From Oculina patagonica (taxonomy: Eukaryota): DNA of 64,000 nt. Position 1 is the first letter of the stretch; each line of letters opens with the position of its first letter. Below, piece after piece: positions 2,850 to 13,900 of this stretch. Made by a program: the position numbers and the translations under genes. Below the pieces are notes generated by a model. The model was given only the letters and a program-made list of their open reading frames with translations, was not told the origin of the DNA and did no database searches. The stretch lies in assembly GCF_052425735.1 (NCBI RefSeq), contig NC_135762.1, positions 27,094,001-27,158,000 on the forward strand, in the 5' to 3' direction.

Positions 2850-5800
2850 TTATAAATTAGCCTCAATTTGTTGGCTGAGCTCTACAAGTTCCGTCAAGGA
2901 TTCTTCATCCATTCCTATCAGAGACGCGTCGCCATTGATCTCTTTCCCGTCGCCATTCTCAATTTCTTCTTCATCGTCCTCATCCTCGTCAATACTCTCG
3001 CTCCTCTTGAAGCTTAATTTGAAGATTGGACACATGCTCGCCACTGTGGTTCTTCGTTTCAGGGGAGCCTTATTGTTGTTTTCTTGATCGTTCCTCAAGC
3101 CTTCTAGCTTCTCGTTGACCGTTGAGATGTCTACAGCGCTCACTCGACGCGTAGGCAGTCCGTCTGGTGCGATATGGCGGTACGCCGCGGGCCCAGTCTC
3201 GCTCCGTCGTTTCATCGATGGGGAGTGGGTTGGGGAGGCCATTGGTGATCTGAACATGCAGATGCTGTTGGGTGCCACGGATGCGGCGATGTCCATGATG
3301 GAAGGCAGTTGCGTTGCGTTCTTGCTCTTTTTGAGGAAGAAACATGGCAGTGGATTGGGGATCTCCGTGTTTGGGGTAAACTCAAATTCAGTGGACCCTC
3401 GAAGATAGCTGCGAATAAGAAAGGAAGATCAAATAATATTAACAACACCAATATTGCTGATCCTAGAAGTATGCAGGACGCGTGTCACATATCAACCTAG
3501 AAAATGGCCCAGCCTCACCACGAGTCTCTCGTGGCTCAGTTGGTTAGAGCGCCCAACCGGTATCTGGGAGGCCATGGGTTTGATTCCCGTCGGGGACTCA
3601 GAATTTTCCTTTGTTTCATGCTTGTGTCATTGTTGAAAAATTAATCTTCAACACCAATATGATAGAATTAAATCTCAGCCGAGGGTATAGTAACAACACT
3701 CCTATCCGCTTCATGCTATGGAAGTCGGGTTACTAATGCGCTAGTCTGTTGAGCCACTTTAAGTAATTCTCGCAGTCGATTTGATTGAACGTATTTATAC
3801 GAAGACTCGTATTCAACTGACTTAGTTACAAACACAATAAGAAAATATAATAAAAGTCTCGCGATCAACTGTCAATCAAACTTTGTACAATCGCGAATCC
3901 AATCTAGAATCCATAAAACTATTCTAAGGGCACTTTCTCAATTACCAGGAAATCAGGAAACTTAAAATATTTTTAACTTTTGACTAGTCTTGCAAATTTT
4001 TATTTAATTTTTTTATATACTATTTTAAACTTTTTACCATTTGTAATTAATTAGTAGTCATTTGTAATTAATTAGCACTAAATTAATAGTTAATTAGTAG
4101 TAGTTAATTAATCAGTAGGTCCACATTAGACTTAAGTCTGGCCGATTTTTAAAAACCTACTTTATAAATAAACCATGTAATATGTGTGTAAGTATGCGTA
4201 CATAAACAAATCCCCCGGTGGGCTATAAAGTTTCGCGACACCCCGAAAACGCTTTATGTATAGATACTCGACAAGCACTTTTTCCTTCTTACCGTTTGGT
4301 CTCGTAGCTTACGTTGATGAAGCCTGGTTTACTGCCCGACTCCATTTTGTTCGCCAGTGTAACCGTGCTTCCAAACAAACAATACCGAGGCATCATCTTG
4401 CCGACAACGCCAGCCATAACTGAACCACTGTGAATTCCAATGCGAATCTGGGAGAAGGAGAAAACATCTTTTTAGAGCAGTTTTTAATTGAGTGTCGTAA
4501 AACCAAAACCAAAGTAACTTCTCTGGCCAATCACAAAGGACATGCATAAACAATCCAGTGAGCAAAGGAAAACTCGAAGCAAATACATGTAGCCGCCACG
4601 AAGCGCGGAAAGACGTGCGCGAGCGAATCGCGATTAGCTTTGCATGAAAGAGAAAGTGACGCGAGTTTTTTTAGCCAATCACTAAGCGTTGAAATGCAAA
4701 ACCAAAGCAAACGAGAATTCTGACTTTCGACACTCGAGTGAAAACGGCACTTTTTCCATCCATACACGTATCACAAATAAAATTATGTCGAGGGAAGAAC
4801 GTTTTTGCGGGAGATTGGTCACGGCGTGCTCAGTGTATTTTGACACGCCTCATGGGGAAACATTGTTTCTCTAAACGTTTCCCCGTTTAGGCGCACCCAC
4901 ATGTGACATTTGTTGCGGAAGCAAATTTGTCTTCGAGAATTTTGAAACAAAACTGTTTCTGATTTTTTTTTTCAGAAGTATTTTGCTTCCACAGCAAATT
5001 GGGAACCAATTTTTCCGCTACAATGGCCGTTTTCACATTAGAAGACGGACAAATCGTCTAGACGGGCAAGTCCTCTGACGATTTGTTCGACTAGGGTAAA
5101 TTTAAAACGACTTTTAAACGGCTTGTCCGTCTAGACGACCAAGTCGTCCTCAAAACATCGTCTTCCTAGACTGTCAAATCGACGGACAAATTCAGACGAC
5201 TTGTACGTCCAAAATCGTGGCCGTCCCGTTTTCACACTAAGACGATTTGTCCGTCTCTAGTGTGAAAACGGCCAATGTTTTCTCGTTTGAAGAGGCGGAG
5301 GCCTTTAATCGCGCGCGCTCAACTAGTCCTTGCGAGAGACCATCGAGAAGTCTTCGGCTTCGGCGACTGAACAAATTTTACAAGTGACGAGGGAGCGGGT
5401 AAATAGAAGCTTATTTTTCCCCTTCCCCTTCTACCTAGACTCGTCTATTATTGTGAGTGTTAGTGAGCAAGCATACCCTGAGAGGAGTCTTGTCGACGGG
5501 TGAAAGAACCTTTTCAGAAGCCTCCATCATTGAGCATGCCATGTGCGCCACCTTCTCTGCGTGATTGTCACATGGCTTTGGTAGACCACCCACCACCATG
5601 TAAGCGTCACCGATGGTCTCTACCTGCGAAGAAACCATAAGTAGGAGCCATGAGCAGAAGCCACAAGAAAAAAAACAACAACGACTATGCTTTCCGCCCC
5701 TTTCTTAGTGCGGTTCCCATCTGTTTGTGCATCTCATTCGGGTAAGGTCTCTGATTTGATGAATTGACAACCAATAGAAACACAGCTTGAGTGAGTGGGA

Positions 5801-8800
5801 GTGTGGATTACAGTCAACTATCCACACACAAGACGGACACCTGAAGACGGACACCCAGTTTTGGGTGGCGACAGGATGAACCTAGCCGATGTCACACATA
5901 CGTCACTGTGAGAAAGGAAAATACTGCCGGCAGCCGCGAAACAGCCGCCCCATCGCGTCCCGCAACGAAGAGCGAAACACTTCGTGTATGAGAGGCGGCT
6001 GTATTCGCAGGCTACTTTCGGCTTAGGCCAATCAGTTTTGAAAAGGTGTCAGCGTTTTTCACAAATTGATATAAAAACAAGCTTGTTCCTTATTAAATAT
6101 CGGGAATGCTCCTTCACAAAACATCCGAGTGCGGAAAAAAGTGAAATGTCATTAAAGCATTCGTCAAAACTATGAGAAATAATTTATTCCCTACTCCCGC
6201 CGAGAAAAGGAAGAGCGGAAGAATGAAAACACACACGGAAAACTATAGTTTCTAATTGCTCTAAAAGATCTGAGGATTAAGAATGAGTTGAAGACGATTT
6301 CTTCTTTTTAATGATTTTCTATAATTAAAAATTATGGAGAATTAGGAAGTCGATTTTGCTGAGGAAATTAACCGTAAACGAAAACTAACTGAGAAATTTT
6401 GTTTTGGGTTTTATAATTGATTCTTTTGCCAGAGCAAACCGTTTCGTATTAATAGTCTTTACAAAACCTTAAACTTTCTTTTGTCAGCTATATGAAGCTA
6501 ACAAAAACAAAGAATTAAGCGGATTTTCAGCAGCGCCTTAATTACACCACATTCCTTTTGATCTTGCCGGCTAAGGCAATTGCAATTAACATTTGAAAAG
6601 AAATTAACTTGCTGCGAAAAGGTAGATCTTAAAATAATTTTTTTTTTTTTGCGGTTTCCTTTTTTTGGGTCTGAGCCTGTTTCTTGAAGAAGCCACCTTT
6701 TTATTTGTCGTTAAGTAGTCGGTTTATTTCACAGTTGAACTATAGCTACGCAAAAACACAAAAGAGAACTTCGTAGGTGCTAGCCATTAATCGACGTTTC
6801 TAAATTTTCGACATCTTAGTTGGGGGCAATTTTGGCCGACTTAGAACAATTACACTCAAATTTTTCGAAATTTGCCAGCAGATAAGTGTTTTACGGGGAA
6901 AATCATCTCTCCTGGCTGTGATTATTTTCTCTAAATGTTTGGGAATAGTTATGTATTACAGCATGAAACAAATTTGTTTGTAAACTGCATACAAACTCTT
7001 TTAATCGAAATATGCAAATTACAAGGGAATAATCAACAGATTGCCTTCGTTGTGGTCTCATTTTCTTTTTCGATGTGATAAATGCGATAGCTTGCTAATT
7101 GCTAAACGCAGATTTTAAATTTTGAATATCCGTTAATTTCGAGCGTCGGTTCTAAACTCGGCCAAAATGCCACACATTTACGAAAAAATTAGAGCCTTTC
7201 ATGCCCCCAACCAAGATGGCGCCGGAAATCGGGGAGAAATTCTATTGATTGCTTGTATGAATAACAAATTAACTATAGTCATATTAAAATGTCTTCTAAT
7301 CAGCACACAGCTGCCTCTATGCTATAGTCCAGCGAGACATGGTAGGCAGCATTTTTGGTCGAAAATGAGGGTTTTGATTTTTGCATGATATTTCGATTTC
7401 TCCTTCGGCATTTTTCGTTGATCGCTCCATGTTCTACGAGGGAAAAAAGGACGCATTCCCTTGCAGGACATAGCTCCTAAATTTGATAATGAAATACCAC
7501 TTCAACTTATAAATAATCAATGACTTTTTGTCAGTTCATTTAGAATTCATAACTTAAACGACAAGATAACAAATAAATCGGTGATATTAACACGAAATGA
7601 GATGATTTCTTTTTCTTATCTCTAGTATTTTTAACTTTTAAATGTTTAATATGTTTTTTTATATATATTTTAGATACTGCGAGACAGAATTTACAGTGAG
7701 TGAATGACAGACTTTCAGACAGCATTGTGGCCCATAAAACATTATCTTGGATATTTGGGTCGAAGGGAAATTAATTTTCATTATCGCAATTTGTGATTAG
7801 GACGTCAAACGAATGCTAAAAACAATTATTAATTAGAAAGGTTTAAATATTATGGTTTTGGAAATAGCCAAAATAACCGACAACAATAGTTATCTTGTGG
7901 GTTTTATAGTGTAAATGTTATAGACATTGCAAAACGCAAAGACAACCTATTAAATTTTAAGAAAAATTAAGCAAAGGCCATTTGACATTTGTGGGCGATA
8001 AAATAAACCTGTATATCAGAAGATCACAAGCGTAAATTTCTCACTAGCACGTAGAAATTTCACATGTGGAGTGAAAATAGGCATTTTATTTGACACCAAA
8101 ACCGCGGACCATCAGTAGATTTTATACTAAATTTAAAATTTCATGTCGCTACCGCCCACTTTGCCTTACCAGGTTTCTGTTTTGTTATTACATTCTAAGC
8201 TTTTAATCTTTCTTCATTCCACTTTCGAGTAAATAAATCTCTAGTTGCTACGTGCGAAAAATACTTAGATCGCTGGAATAAAGACATGCACTTATAGCAG
8301 GTAAAATTGAATCAAAAATATGTCGAGTGCCCGGCGGATAACCTTAAGGAGAAAAGAGCTACTTGGGGGTCGAAACAGAATGGAAAAATAAATAAAACCC
8401 TCTTATGCAGGAAGTCTGTAAAACCTTTTTAAACAAATACGACTGTCACATACGTACAATAATCAAATATCAGAGGCGAAATTTGCATAAAATGTTTGTA
8501 GTAGCTGTATAAATGATGAAGAAGGAAAATTGTGTTAATGAAAAAAGAGTTTCTGTGGTGAAGCTGTCTTTATAAATGATTAATCGTAAAGGGGAGAAAA
8601 ACAAATTTTAAGATCTCACGCAATCTGAACATTTGGATAATAAAGTTGTAAAAAAAAAATTGTCTTTATCTTTTTGCGGGTAGTATAAAATAAGCGATTA
8701 TAAATGTGAGCGGATTGAATTCACCGAACCGCAGCCGCGAAATTCGATCATCGCGTCTGTTTGCTCTTTGGCGCGAAATTAATTCGCGGTCGATCCAAAA

Positions 8801-10905
8801 TGTCATCGTTAATATAACCCGCTAAACGAATAGGCCGAAGGTCTTTTCAAGAACGGCAAAGTCGCAAACATTTGGAAACGACGCAAGCTTAGTAGTTCGG
8901 CGTTTCGGTAAACATTTGTCAATCACGGAAGACAAAAGACGGGTCCCCGTGAATGACAATAGGCGAGTTAAAAGGCAGAAAGGGAGTTTATTTTGGGAAT
9001 ATAAACGTACCTTGTAAACATCGTTCATCCCGCTTAGCATATCGAAGTAGGTGTAGAGCTTGTTCAGCATCCGTACAATGTCCATAGGTACAATTTTGTC
9101 GTCGGAACATAACGCTGTAAAGCCGACAATGTCACTGAAAAGAATTGTAACAAGTTTGTAGTTTTCAGCGGGAACCGGTTGATTTAACCGCAGTTTTGCC
9201 GCGACTTCTGGGGGTAAAATAGAGTGCAACAAATCATCCGTACGGTTCTTGTTCTCCGTGAGTTTGCTTTCAACTTTCTTTAGATCGTTGCTAGTTTCTT
9301 CCAGCTTTTCCACCAACTCTCTCTCGGCTCTCCTCGCTTGCGACATGAACATAAGATCGCGCGTGGCATCGTGAACGGGAATATCATTGAAAAATATTCC
9401 CAACTGTTTAAAGCTCTCCAGGTTGCTTGCCCGAGGGGAACACAGAAATAGAACACTATCGTTCTTCGGTATATATATCATTTGACCCTTCAGGCGTAGG
9501 GTCGGATTGGCTTGGCTCATTCTTCGACCGTCAGGGACATCTGTAGGGTCGGGTGCAATCGCAAATCTCAGCGCAGACTGTTTTGCCGAGACTATAAAGA
9601 CCGTGTTGATATGGGACAGCACAGTTTCGAAGGTAAACTCCATTCGCGGTCTTGCCAATTCGAAAGCGTCCGTGAACGGGAAGGGGTCACCGGTAGTAAA
9701 GCGTTTGTTTAGGAGACGCATCATTGCTACTCCGGTTTGCGTGATATTCAGCTTTCGATCGAACATCACGTGGAATGGAAAGGCTTTGCAAAAAGACAAC
9801 AGATTAATACCTCCGCGCTGTTTCTTTGCAACCTTCTGTGCATTATCCGGCAGCTGAACACCCTGTTGCCCCGGGACGCGTGTTTAAATCAAACGTTTGA
9901 AGGCCGAGTTTGGAATGGGTCGCATTTTTACAACCGGTTTCTCTGATTGCAAACACTACATGTCCATGATCGTCCGTTCGCGCTTGATTCACTGAAACTA
10001 CAACTTCAGTGTTCAGCATTTCCTTAGCAACGGCTTTCACAATCCCGATCACAATATGCTCTAGTCCCTGTCTTCTTGAGTAGTAATGCAATAGTAAGGT
10101 GCCGTCAGATGTCTCCGTACAGCGGAACGACGGTGCTTCCATTCCGGGATAAATGGTGGCAAGATGGTCATGAAGCGCATCCAGATTGCACAAAAAATCC
10201 CGCAGATTTCTGCCCAGCACTTTCAAAATGCGGTCGTAGCCAGATTGCACGCAGTAGTCCAAAAAGTGCGCGCCAAATGCTTCCAAAACATCGTTTAAAG
10301 GCAGACCTGAAATAAGTAATTGAAGATCTGTAGGTTTATGTTTTCAAAATTTCGAGTACCGTCGGTAATTTTACACTTTTGACCCACTTAGCTACAGTCC
10401 GCCACATTCTAAGCCTAGATTTACGGCATAATACCATTTTTGTGGCCTGTTGTAGAACGCATTCTATACCAATATAAATTTACAAGTATATAGCTCCATT
10501 CTGTACAAAATGAACAAGGTGTTAGTAAAACGCATACCTAAAGTCTCGCAGGCCGCGGCAACCAAGCTAAGCGTCTCTTCATCATCGTAAACTTTGTGAA
10601 TAAGATACGAACCGCCGTCGAGCTCAACCCCAGCTTTCTCGCTAAAGAAGAAAAGAGAGAAAACAAGCAACGCTTACGTTATGAAGCGATGGCTTTACGA
10701 ATCATTTTCGAGCCGTTCGAAAAACTATTAAAGTTCGCTTACATGATCGATCGCCACACGTCTTCACCAAACTTACTGATTACTAAGTCCGCGAGGGCGC
10801 AGTGCACAAAACCATACTGCAACAGAAAAGTAAATGCAGTGAGCAACATGCGAAAGTAACGGTTTGAGAGATTTTAGTATAACAAATATGCGAAATCCTT
10901 ACCAT
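2850..10905 (-). CDS. Soluble guanylate cyclase subunit (H-NOX + PAS/HNOBA + coiled coil + cyclase), 7 exons, ~778 aa if the +1 frame break is bypassed
   Basis: Exons (minus): 10905-10903 (ATG|gtaagg), 10816-10743 ([24 protein letters not shown]), 10641-10538, 10306-9011, 5623-5477, 4447-4293, 3408-2850. All introns are GT-AG and phases are compatible, apart from one extra base inside exon 4. Motifs: NLDALHDHL (heme His), HYYSRR (YxSxR), [37 protein letters not shown]|[24 protein letters not shown]. Confidence 0.92.
3524..3650 (+). mobile_element. tRNA-derived SINE
   Basis: A-box GTGGCTCAGTTGGTTAGAGC and degenerate B-box GGTTTGATTCCC, followed by a non-tRNA tail; lies in the last sGC intron. 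Confidence 0.65.
4473..4752 (+). mobile_element. MITE family A (TAGAGCAGTTTTCAATTGAGTGTC terminus), copy 1
   Basis: Shared CCAATCA-rich ~280-bp body also found at 16916, 34447, 39703 and 52383; terminal inverted repeats TAGAGCAGTTTT / AAAACTGCTCTA (degenerate here). Confidence 0.8.
5025..5273. mobile_element. MITE with ~35-bp TIRs and 3-bp TSD (PIF/Harbinger-like)
   Basis: GGCCGTTTTCACATTAGAAGACGGACAAATCGTCT ... AGACGATTTGTCCGTCTCTAGTGTGAAAACGGCC, flanked by AAT/AAT. Confidence 0.75.
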
Positions 10906-13900
10906 TATTTTGCCAATGGTCCGCAGAGTTGGCCTTTGCTTTGTAAACCGACTTTCGGCTTGCTTCTAATGGTTTTCCTGATTGTTTGCGGTGTCAGTCA
11001 CGTGTCATGATATCTATCAAAGCATCTGGGCTGTAATTATCAGCGATAGCTCCGGCCGTCCAATCACTTTGTATTGCTATTGTCAATAGGACACCTTCAC
11101 ATTCTAAAGTGGCGTATCTGAAAAGCAATCGGCTTGTCAAAATTCGCTTAGTGGCAGCGGTGATTTTGTCTTCTATGGATGAACAGAACATCCGATATCG
11201 CAATAGATCGCGCCGCCTAAAACGCCTAAAACATCATCGCTGTATTTGACAGCCTATCACATATCTTGTGTTACCCTCATCAATGCATCCAGCTAGCAAC
11301 ATTGCTAGCATAACACAACAGAAGTTAAGCACATAATTCTAGTTTCATTATTCACTTTTCTTCGGGTTCTGTGTGCAATCAATGTGAAAGATAAACAAAC
11401 AATTCAACATGCGAGTCGCTGGATGTCAAACACCTATTTGTTACGCGCAATGTTTTCTTCAATAAGCTTATAAACTTTTCGTGTGTCCATGTTTCTTTTC
11501 ATTGTAAGCGATAACCTTGTTGTCAACATGAGCTCTTTCATCAGATGCTGTGAGGTCTAACGCAATTTTATACCCTCGACGACAACAGAAAAATGCGAAG
11601 CTCGAGAGTTTCTCTTATAGCGTTATCTCCTTATTTTGATAGAAAGATCTCGATGCAACATTAACCGGACCATGACAACCTATTGTTTCCTGTAATCGTA
11701 CACAAAAGCCATTATTCTAAACTGTCTTTTGATTGCCAAGGCAAGTGAAGCAATATTATATTTATCAAAACAACTGCAGGGGGCTTGCTCTCAAATCATC
11801 GAACATCATTTGGTTCACTGCGTCTGCTAAACACATATCAGCTTAACTTTGAACGGACCAAAAGAAGAGCTAACCAAAAGAAACCCTTTAAAAACAGCTA
11901 TCATCCAATGGTAGATGATAGTTTTAAATGCTGTTATTTTGAAACAGATCGTCTTCGAAATTCGTGCGTTTGATAAGAGAGCGGGCGGCCGCAATTATTA
12001 CAACGGCCTTTGACATTTTTATTGATTTTAAAAATAGAATAATTTCGTAAAGTATTCACTTTACGCCGCAAAATGACTGCTACAGTAGTTGTAAAAAAAA
12101 AACAGTACCTTAGCTTTGTACTGTACGCGATAAGCTGTGATTTTCAGCCCTCTAGCGTTTAATATCGCTTGCGACTGAAGTACCTTTGTCTTAATTTTAG
12201 CTTCATTAAGGCAACCCAATACACCAAATTTAGGTTATGGTTGATTTCTTATCAGCCTGTTTCTTCCATTAATAAATGCCTTGGGCTAAACTTGTTAGTT
12301 AAAAACACCCTCGATATTACTGTTTTTAAATCGTTTCTTTTGGTTTTACCTAGAGATGTTCACAAAAACATTTTGTTATGCGAAAACTGGTCGGGAAACT
12401 ACAGACACGAAAACAAACTTCGGCGTTTTCATCGTAAACTGCGGAAACATCAATTACTATCTCGCCTTACCTCGCTTTTGACACTCTCAAAATCGTATCA
12501 GCTCGTCCGATCAGATTAAATTGTGGGCGATTTGGAGCTTTCGCTAAACTGATCAGCGAATTATACTCGAGGAGAAGAAAATAATTGTCGCGAAATGAAA
12601 TTCAATAAAAGTACTACTATTCACAAACCGGGTCCAAATTTATGAACATAAGCAAAAAGACTTATTGTCGCCTAGCAGCGAAGAATCTTTGAAAGGTTTT
12701 TAATTTGCAGATACTCCATTTGGCTGCATGAGATGTAAATTTTCCATCATGAACTGAGACGAAAGAAAAGCAACCCTTTCTTTATAAAACCGCCAAAGTG
12801 TTATTCAAGTAAAGAAGCTTATTTCTTAGGCGCAAGCAAGACAATGGTCAATCACTTCTATAACAGACTACAAAGCTTGCCGAAAAACTGTTAGAAATCG
12901 ATGTTTGAAATTCAAAATCAATTTATTATAATTACATTTCTCCCGTTTAACGCATATATATCCGTAGCAATGTGCTTTATTAAGCAAAAGAGAGTCTATA
13001 CTGTATTCTGGCTGGTAAAATGAATTAAGAAAGGTTTCTCGCCATAAATTATTTGTAATATTTAAGCCGCAAATCCCCTCATGGTTTTAATATTTATTTC
13101 GTCATGGTTTTAATATTTATACATAAAATGAGTCCCTTATATTGTATTGTGGTCATTTTACTGACCTCCGCCATCTAGCCAACTCTTATTGCAGACGTTC
13201 AAAGTGGATAGTTTTACCATCACTCTATAAAATAATAGAAATATACTGCACGATTTGTTGAAAGAGATGGTTTTTTTTTTCATTTTTCATTACAAAACAA
13301 TTTTTGATATTGATATCGTAGGGGAAAAAGGAATAATAAAATTATTGACCATAATTAATGCAAAAACTAATAGATCAAATATATAAGGTACGGTACTTCT
13401 CAAATATTGGTTGTGAATGCTTTTGTATATTGTTCCAAAACCAAAATTTCCCATTTTGAGTACATTTTATTAGATCTATCTGCTTGTCAATTCTAGAATT
13501 CTACACGAAAGTTCACGACACATGCAGTATAAAACGTAATGATGTCCAAATTTGAATCAGAAAAACTAAATATAAGAAAAAAGGTATCGAAAAGCGCTGT
13601 AATACCCGGAGTGATTCGAAAAAAAATTCGAAACTTAATTAATGGCAGAATTAACACACATATACAATTACGTCGAAAAATTGCGAGTATGTAAGAGAAA
13701 TAACATCACCGATATGTTCATATTTTAGATAAACATGTCAACTAACCTGGTTGCTGTGCATAATATAACTTGACAACATTTTTATGGACCTTTCGGGCGA
13801 CAACAACCGGCATGCTAGCTTTCCTATTCGTTCTGTACGCTATACTTAATTTAAAATACATAAACCTGTTTGAACATATCTTGATTAACAGACTTACCAT

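Follow-up and report, generated by a model that had tools for sequence, protein, structure and literature searches.

Textbook nitric oxide (NO) sensing relies on an alpha/beta soluble guanylate cyclase (sGC) that carries one heme. A gene of the coral Oculina patagonica raises the question of whether a subunit in the alpha role can also have an NO sensor of its own. The gene lies in a stretch of 64,000 nucleotides (the window; contig NC_135762.1, positions 27,094,001 to 27,158,000 of the forward strand, i.e. C5:27094001-27158000 of the 529 Mb genome), where it runs on the minus strand from 10905 to 2850; it has seven exons and, in the corrected model, codes for an sGC protein of about 778 aa. 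An original prediction, made from the letters alone, held that a beta-type heme pocket and an alpha-type catalytic half-site are united in this one protein. Residue alignments bear this out, and 16 of 16 orthologues are alike. We propose that the gene probably encodes an sGC subunit with the alpha (C1) catalytic role and a working NO-type heme sensor, which would act as an obligate heterodimer with a beta-type partner.

Sensor, half-site and gene structure

The H-NOX exon was compared with solved structures using phmmer, and it matches beta1 at 8e-42 (Manduca, 6pas_B) and 2e-40 (human, 6jt0_B), with alpha1 at 6e-8 and 3e-4. His106, Tyr135, Ser137, Arg139 and Ile145 of the coral protein align with beta1 His105, Tyr135, Ser137, Arg139 and Ile145 (6jt0_B, 5mnw_A, 6pas_B); the beta1 heme set (i.e. 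the proximal His, the Tyr-x-Ser-x-Arg propionate clamp and a non-polar residue 145) is thus complete, reading H-Y-S-R-I. Equivalents of Pro118, Cys78, Cys122 and Cys214 are retained as well, and the PAS-coiled-coil part that follows scores 217 bits to beta1 versus 174 to alpha1. The heme and cyclase motifs quoted in the original prediction are all found in the minus-strand translation, and the structure alignments place the residues as it had them. Where the atypical oxygen (O2)-sensing sGCs have a distal Tyr, at the equivalent of beta1-145 or at the nearby position used in nematodes, the coral protein has Ile145; because the distal-Tyr rule separates O2-type from NO-type sensors (PMC1435932), the coral H-NOX would be expected to bind heme with NO selectivity.

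The cyclase domain has a different affinity. In the human catalytic-domain structure alpha supplies Asp486, Asp530 and Arg574, and beta supplies Glu473, Cys541, Asn548, Arg552 and Lys593; neither an alpha nor a beta homodimer can rebuild the active site, and neither is active (PMC3591389). All of the alpha-role residues are present in the coral protein (Asp452, Asp498 and Arg543), together with Glu494 and Cys564, which occur in both alpha and beta. The beta-role residues are lost at all three positions, with Thr571 in place of Asn, Lys575 in place of Arg, and no KGK hairpin to provide the equivalent of Lys593. The first two of these losses had been predicted and are confirmed; the third had been overlooked. 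In a local C-terminal alignment the R-G....KGK hairpin is seen in beta1, beta2, O2-type and sponge sequences, and is absent from alpha and from every relative examined. Among solved structures exons 5 and 6 are closest to human alpha1 (the best PDB match of exon 5 is 3uvj_A, at 8e-10), and in the phmmer comparison a 13-residue segment of exon 6 aligns to alpha1 FGNNVTLANKFES. By the logic of alpha1/beta1 (PMC3591389), a subunit without any of the C2-role residues would be unable to build a complete site alone, and pairing with a complementary subunit would be obligate because a homodimer would hold two incomplete sites.

The gene is transcribed and correctly spliced. We aligned contigs of three public runs (X1, X4 and X7) to window positions 5400-10950; contigs of all three are spliced and therefore represent cDNA, introns of 86, 101, 231 and 3387 nt are confirmed, and a single 2294-nt contig from X4 spans exons 2 to 7. 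The features of the gene are as follows, in window coordinates.

10903-10905, minus strand: start codon ATG, which closes exon 1 and is followed by the 86-nt intron 10902-10817
10743-10816, minus strand: coding exon 2, residues 2-26, the N-terminus of H-NOX; joint 10641/10743 (101-nt intron) in X1 and X4
10538-10641, minus strand: coding exon 3, H-NOX residues ~26-61; joint 10304/10536 (231-nt intron) in X1, X4 and X7
9011-10306, minus strand: coding exon 4, large (~1.3 kb), with the remaining H-NOX, the linker, PAS/HNOBA, the coiled coil and the first 54 cyclase residues
Key codons of exon 4, minus strand: His106 at 10172-10170, Tyr135 at 10085-10083, Arg139 at 10073-10071, Ile145 at 10055-10053 and Asp452 at 9133-9131; Ser137 also lies here
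9877-9881, minus strand: surplus base in ACGCGT, a +1 frameshift within exon 4, where frames 0 and 1 overlap
5477-5623, minus strand: coding exon 5, cyclase residues 493-541, with Glu494 (5620-5618) and the second metal-binding Asp, Asp498 (5608-5606), in VETIGDAYM
4293-4447, minus strand: coding exon 6, cyclase residues 542-593, with Arg543, Cys564 (4381-4379), Thr571 (4360-4358) and Lys575 (4348-4346)
2850-3408, minus strand: last coding exon 7, in which the cyclase domain ends (...PCFFL) and lacks the KGK hairpin, and a tail; stop codon TAA at 2852-2850, acceptor ttattcgcag/C, phase-matched

The splice sites between exons 1 and 2 (donor ATG/GTAAGG, acceptor ttctgttgcag/TATGG) bound a GT-AG intron, and the corresponding joint 10816/10903 is present in a cDNA contig of run X1. 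The predicted MYGFV start is correct only after splicing, since this intron parts the ATG from TAT GGT TTT GTG. Exon 4 is covered unbroken by cDNA contigs from 9008/9009 to 10304, and the joint 5621/9009 (the 3387-nt intron) is found in contigs of X1, X4 and X7. Contig ends that extend past 5477 read into the start of exon 6 (4447) in all three runs, and the X4 contig continues for 721 nt past 5477 in agreement with exon 6 plus exon 7. The gene had been predicted to span 4293-10905, which is too short; position 4293 only ends the penultimate coding exon, and the further exon at 3408-2850 was missed. This exon adds 186 residues, including a tail of ~170 residues that is Ser/Pro-rich and then acidic and that is conserved in the Montipora orthologue P0191. 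A Pfam scan of the tail matched no family, and phmmer with the first 45 residues of the exon gave no match in the PDB. In the exon translations Pfam recognises HNOB (2.7e-36), HNOBA (7e-60) and, on three exons, Guanylate_cyc, in the order HNOB - HNOBA - Guanylate_cyc, and one cDNA contig joins all three in one polypeptide. The raw poly-A run X23 contained no reads matching the stretch compared (window 5400-10950).

The cDNA contigs are one base shorter than the assembly within exon 4, the base being missing at 9877 (X1, X7) or at 9879 (X4), and this is the sole difference in 9008/9009-10304. The Montipora orthologue is uninterrupted across the linker, and in Nematostella the gene is collinear across this large exon. 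The surplus base reflects either a mistake in the assembly or an allele private to the sequenced animal, and in the protein model we have written the break as XX (residues 203-204). A 124-nt intron at 9934-9811, bridging the frame change between 9935 and 9810, is ruled out by the one-base difference in the cDNA and by the read-through in Montipora; our first trees used a gene model with this intron, and the affected linker is outside the conserved columns.

Orthologues and phylogenetic placement

Relatives were collected by an exhaustive search with the large exon and then by a profile search, and residue patterns were read from a 63-sequence alignment. The exhaustive search gave best representatives at 50-56% identity; the best match, at 75% identity, is from the coral Montipora foliosa, and Nematostella is at 69%, the matches being nearly full length. 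The clade also takes in the jellyfish Sanderia, two placozoans, Capitella, the nemertean Tubulanus, the centipede Strigamia, many ticks and mites, and Branchiostoma; named members include Montipora P0191, Nematostella P0186, Trichoplax P0010, Strigamia P0006, tick P0004 and P0154, and Branchiostoma P0173. In databases they are called 'beta-1-like' (NCBI), 'beta-2' or, once, in amphioxus, 'GUCY1A2'.

All 16 aligned orthologues keep the heme His, Tyr, Ser and Arg with Ile or Met at the distal position, and all keep both Asp, the Glu and the Cys. The Asn is kept in none of them (Thr in 12, Gly in 2, Ser in 2), and the Arg position is Lys in 12 of the 16. The clade pattern can thus be written as H-Y-S-R-I/M plus D-E-D-C-(T/G/S)-(K/R), and the identities to Montipora and Nematostella show the gene to be under strong constraint. 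The class appears to be an orthologue group of its own, older than the divergence of placozoans, cnidarians and bilaterians, and it seems to be missing from vertebrates, insects and nematodes; no member from these groups was present among the matches examined, although their absence was not searched for directly. Three vertebrate matches with a similar signature, P0183 (Bagarius), P0190 (Camelus) and P0197 (Danionella), are ruled out as clade members, as they are gene models that fuse adjacent beta1 and alpha1 genes. Fused models of this kind mimic the signature of a beta H-NOX with an alpha cyclase and are a trap for database mining.

We then considered where this group falls relative to alpha and beta1, using trees that rest on ~140-400 columns. 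With all columns of the cyclase domain the group is sister to canonical alpha (support 97/87). With an expanded set of sequences and the catalytic motif columns removed, the group is monophyletic (99/95) and joins alpha at 94/76, its inner order resembles the species tree, and alpha (100/96) and beta1 (100/99) each form a separate clade that excludes it. In the N-terminal half (H-NOX, PAS and coiled coil) the group is again monophyletic (100/99) and is excluded from both the alpha clade (100/100) and the beta1 clade (100/99); here its best placement is outside alpha + beta1, and constraining it to join alpha costs 1.7 log-likelihood units (approximately unbiased (AU) test, p 0.34). On the cyclase columns the AU test rejects neither group + beta1 (p 0.20) nor alpha + beta1 (p 0.14), and a tree of H-NOX alone does not resolve the backbone.

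A position of the group as sister to alpha is favoured by these trees, although it is not established. The original prediction had allowed that a firm grouping within beta1, or a T/K pair that was a one-off substitution, would speak against it; the beta1 clade (100/99) excludes the protein, and the loss of Asn is common to all 16 orthologues. Its further suggestion, that the protein reflects the state before the alpha H-NOX degenerated, agrees with the best cyclase trees, in which the group is sister to alpha, but the AU values on the cyclase columns leave the alternatives standing and the N-terminal order is open. There is no sign of a domain swap, and the likeness of the sensor to the beta type is best explained by retention of an ancestral state, not by kinship with beta1.

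The tandem cluster, a candidate partner and alternative explanations

Within 35 kb of the minus strand four sGC genes follow one another in tandem (C5:27069453-27104905, loci L013-L017), mostly just to the left of the window, and further sGC genes are found on other contigs. The gene models of the neighbours are chains of tblastn pieces.

C5:27069453-27073352, same strand: gene D, beta1-like; H-Y-S-R-I, G-E-D-C-N-R
C5:27079765-27083320, same strand: gene C, beta-like with Met at the distal position; H-Y-S-R-M, G-E-D-C-N-R
C5:27088840-27091602, same strand: gene B, canonical alpha with a degenerate H-NOX; V-C-D-R-F, D-E-D-C-T-K
Window 10905-2850, minus strand: the heme-bearing alpha-role gene, last of the four tandem cyclase genes
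C12:12467366-12491954: gene E, O2-type, with distal Tyr, both metal Asp, Asn and Arg; homodimer-type
C4:62301724-62310145, C4:62408975-62416324 and C4:62422007-62437175: genes F, G and H, with Tyr for the first metal Asp; Asn and Arg kept

The cluster holds an NO-type set of two alpha-role and two beta-role genes. Genes C and D, 13-35 kb away on the same strand, have Gly at the position of the first Asp and keep Asn and Arg; the identity of the heme-bearing alpha-role gene to its tandem neighbours is 33-44%. Genes E, F and G have a distal Tyr at the beta1-145 equivalent. The O2-type genes on C4 look like beta-role partners of the gene on C12, in parallel to fly Gyc-89D with Gyc-88E. Two of the C4 copies and a piece at C1818:888-1241 are near-identical.

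We suggest that the coral subunit would use its PAS, coiled-coil and cyclase domains to pair with a subunit that gives Asn, Arg and Lys but is without the first Asp; in the coral genome the partner would be either or both of the beta-type genes of the tandem cluster (C and D). Such a dimer would carry two hemes, and of its two catalytic sites one would be active and the other a degenerate pseudo-site; NO at either or both sensors would drive cyclic GMP (cGMP) synthesis. A prediction of the PAS-coiled-coil complex with gene D gave an ipSAE of 0.44 (best control, 0.00), with a contact agreement between runs of at least 95% and a partner predicted local distance difference test (pLDDT) value of 74, in a range (0.60 and below) where the passes in our calibration comprised 5 of 78 solved complexes and all 4 of the mismatches that passed. 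The pass may reflect mere likeness, since a solved alpha1/beta1 complex exists.

Several points weigh against this proposal. Heme binding, the choice of ligand, the make-up of the dimer and its activity are deduced from sequence, the partner could be gene C, gene D or both, four of the 16 orthologues have Arg at the position that is Lys in the coral protein, and the reference assembly carries a frameshift in the gene. Isolated cyclase domains associate promiscuously (PMC3591389), and because of this the adjacency of the genes and the weak complex score say little. Synteny elsewhere lends no support to a partner: in Nematostella there is no other cyclase within 10 kb of the orthologue, and in Tubulanus the sGC genes are on the same chromosome but megabases apart. 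In Tubulanus polymorphus OZ123230.1 (L039, L040, L041) the orthologue and two beta1-like genes, one with a further cyclase beside it, lie at 3.9, 6.4 and 22.3 Mb, and from this shared chromosome it would seem that the sGC genes belong to an old linkage group.

The subunit could instead be a regulatory or decoy one, which is inactive as a homodimer, or ties up beta (or alpha) subunits in inactive heterodimers, or serves mainly as an NO/heme buffer. The loss of three catalytic residues fits this, as does the presence of a canonical alpha gene next door. Catalytic interfaces are described as promiscuous and inactive homodimers are documented (PMC3591389), and so is an inactive heterodimer, that of Manduca beta3 with NO-sensitive subunits, to which such a decoy may be likened (cited in PMC1435932). 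However, both metal Asp, the alpha-side Arg, the Glu and the Cys are invariant in the 16 orthologues, from placozoans to amphioxus, which is hard to square with a site that never works, and the residue pattern is the same as that of canonical alpha, which is catalytically essential. We therefore regard a decoy as unlikely.

It is very unlikely that the partner is an O2-type subunit encoded by the genes on C4, which would make the dimer a mixed NO/O2 sensor. In genes F, G and H the first metal Asp is replaced by Tyr while Asn and Arg are kept, and they need a provider of that Asp, but gene E on C12, a homodimer-type gene of their own clade, is available for this role and mirrors fly Gyc-88E/Gyc-89D (PMC1435932); moreover, all three C4 genes lie on a different chromosome and are distant from the heme-bearing alpha-role gene in every tree.

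We give equally little credence to an active homodimer that works despite Thr and Lys, perhaps weakly or in a Mn2+-dependent manner, with the Lys partly standing in for Arg. Lys is a conservative change for Arg, which some of the orthologues retain, and rat beta2, among the subunits once taken for obligate partners, has Mn-dependent homodimer activity. The ribose-binding Asn, however, is absent in 16 of 16 orthologues and the Lys hairpin in all relatives examined, and alpha2 homodimers, which show the same pattern, have no activity, nor do beta2 homodimers (PMC3591389).

That the gene is a pseudogene or an artefact, i.e. a frameshifted copy or an apparent hybrid of its beta and alpha neighbours, is scarcely credible: the +1 frameshift at 9877-9881 and the fused alpha1/beta1 models of like signature in vertebrate databases (P0183, P0190, P0197) would favour it, but the extra base is missing from all three runs and the Nematostella and Montipora orthologues are collinear, while a recent chimera of the adjacent beta and alpha genes is ruled out by the 33-44% identity to the neighbours and the age of the clade, and a gene-model fusion by the single large exon that holds H-NOX from residue 62, PAS, the coiled coil and the cyclase start, and by the 2294-nt cDNA contig across exons 2-7.

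Two further elements were noted within introns of the gene. In the last intron, at window positions 3524-3599 on the plus strand, there is a tRNA-like element (ARAGORN, tRNA-Thr(GGT); Rfam tRNA, 37.5 bits with a gathering score of 29), which could be a tRNA gene, a pseudogene or the head of a tRNA-derived short interspersed element (SINE). In the 3.4-kb intron, at 5958-6143 and chiefly at 5984-6016, transcriptome contigs pile up to a summed word depth of 150-286, compared with 20-107 on the exons; the pieces are only ~30 nt long and run on into unrelated sequence, which suggests a short motif that recurs in many transcripts.

Comparison with known cyclases and biological meaning

The coral protein, which we take to be an alpha-role subunit with an NO-type sensor, can be set beside four kinds of known subunit. 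With canonical alpha (GUCY1A1; 6jt0_A, 3uvj_A, 6pas_A) it shares both Asp, the alpha-side Arg, the Thr/Lys pair, the absence of the KGK hairpin and the short spacing before VETIGDAY. The alpha H-NOX, in contrast, is degenerate and cannot bind heme (PMC3591389), reading V-C-D-R-F in the alpha of this genome where the coral protein has the full heme set, and in solved chains alpha has an N-terminal extension (alpha1 ~residue 128 corresponds to coral ~63), whereas the coral protein starts with MYGF. To canonical beta1 (GUCY1B1; 6jt0_B, 6pas_B) it is ~60% identical in H-NOX, with the heme set and the equivalents of Cys78, Cys122 and Cys214 in common; but in beta1 the first metal Asp is replaced by Gly, and Asn548, Arg552 and Lys593 are provided, where the coral protein has Asp, Thr and Lys and is without the hairpin. 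The homodimer-competent sGCs (vertebrate beta2, Manduca beta3, choanoflagellate Cf-sGC1 and Chlamydomonas CYG12) are similar in their heme-type H-NOX, both Asp and one 10-residue motif, and differ in that they have D-E-D-C-N-R with the KGK hairpin, compared with D-E-D-C-T-K and no hairpin in the coral protein.

The O2-sensing pairs (GCY-35/GCY-36 and Gyc-88E/Gyc-89Da/Db) provide the precedent for a heterodimer of two heme-bearing subunits. In C. elegans GCY-35 and GCY-36, both beta-like and both with the heme His, form a heterodimer as an alpha/beta-like pair, which is known genetically, and in the fly the Gyc-89D subunits (Gyc-89Da/Db) depend on Gyc-88E (PMC1435932). The original prediction overlooked this existing genetic precedent for two-heme, alpha/beta-like pairs among the atypical O2-sensing cyclases (PMC1435932). 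These pairs differ from the coral protein in having a distal Tyr, in sensing O2 and in belonging to separate clades; the coral protein has a distal Ile and falls in a clade with alpha and beta1.

The open-access literature that we searched contains no description of this class. A placozoan survey reports that seven cyclases cluster with human alpha and beta, and says nothing further on the class (PMC7400543); a 2026 preprint refers to 'divergent lineages' around GUCY1B1 that are uncharacterised (10.64898/2026.09.15.751659); and a choanoflagellate study took the distal Tyr as its sole criterion for classing sensors. Both the class and its residue logic thus appear to be undescribed, although the gene models are public and the principle has a precedent in the O2-sensing cyclases.

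It is tempting to regard the clade as a surviving alpha lineage from before the loss of heme, which together with a beta-type partner would form a two-heme NO receptor with a dose-response unlike that of the one-heme vertebrate enzyme; we put this forward tentatively, as a serious possibility that falls somewhat short of probable. If it is true, activation could involve two sensors, e.g. in a two-step or cooperative manner, and a large share of animal diversity (cnidarians, placozoans, annelids, nemerteans, chelicerates, myriapods and cephalochordates) would run two parallel NO receptors, with separate losses in vertebrates, insects and nematodes; the class would then have gone unnoticed because it was lost in these three groups. 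The labels 'beta-1-like' and 'GUCY1A2' in databases conceal a third class, which is present in corals, ticks, mites and further animals in which NO/cGMP signalling is studied (bleaching, metamorphosis and tick salivation). The dead sensor domain of alpha is a puzzle for which an alpha-role class with an intact pocket would offer the natural comparison, and the class could reveal how a second heme alters activation and the sensitivity to NO, as well as when and why alpha lost its heme.

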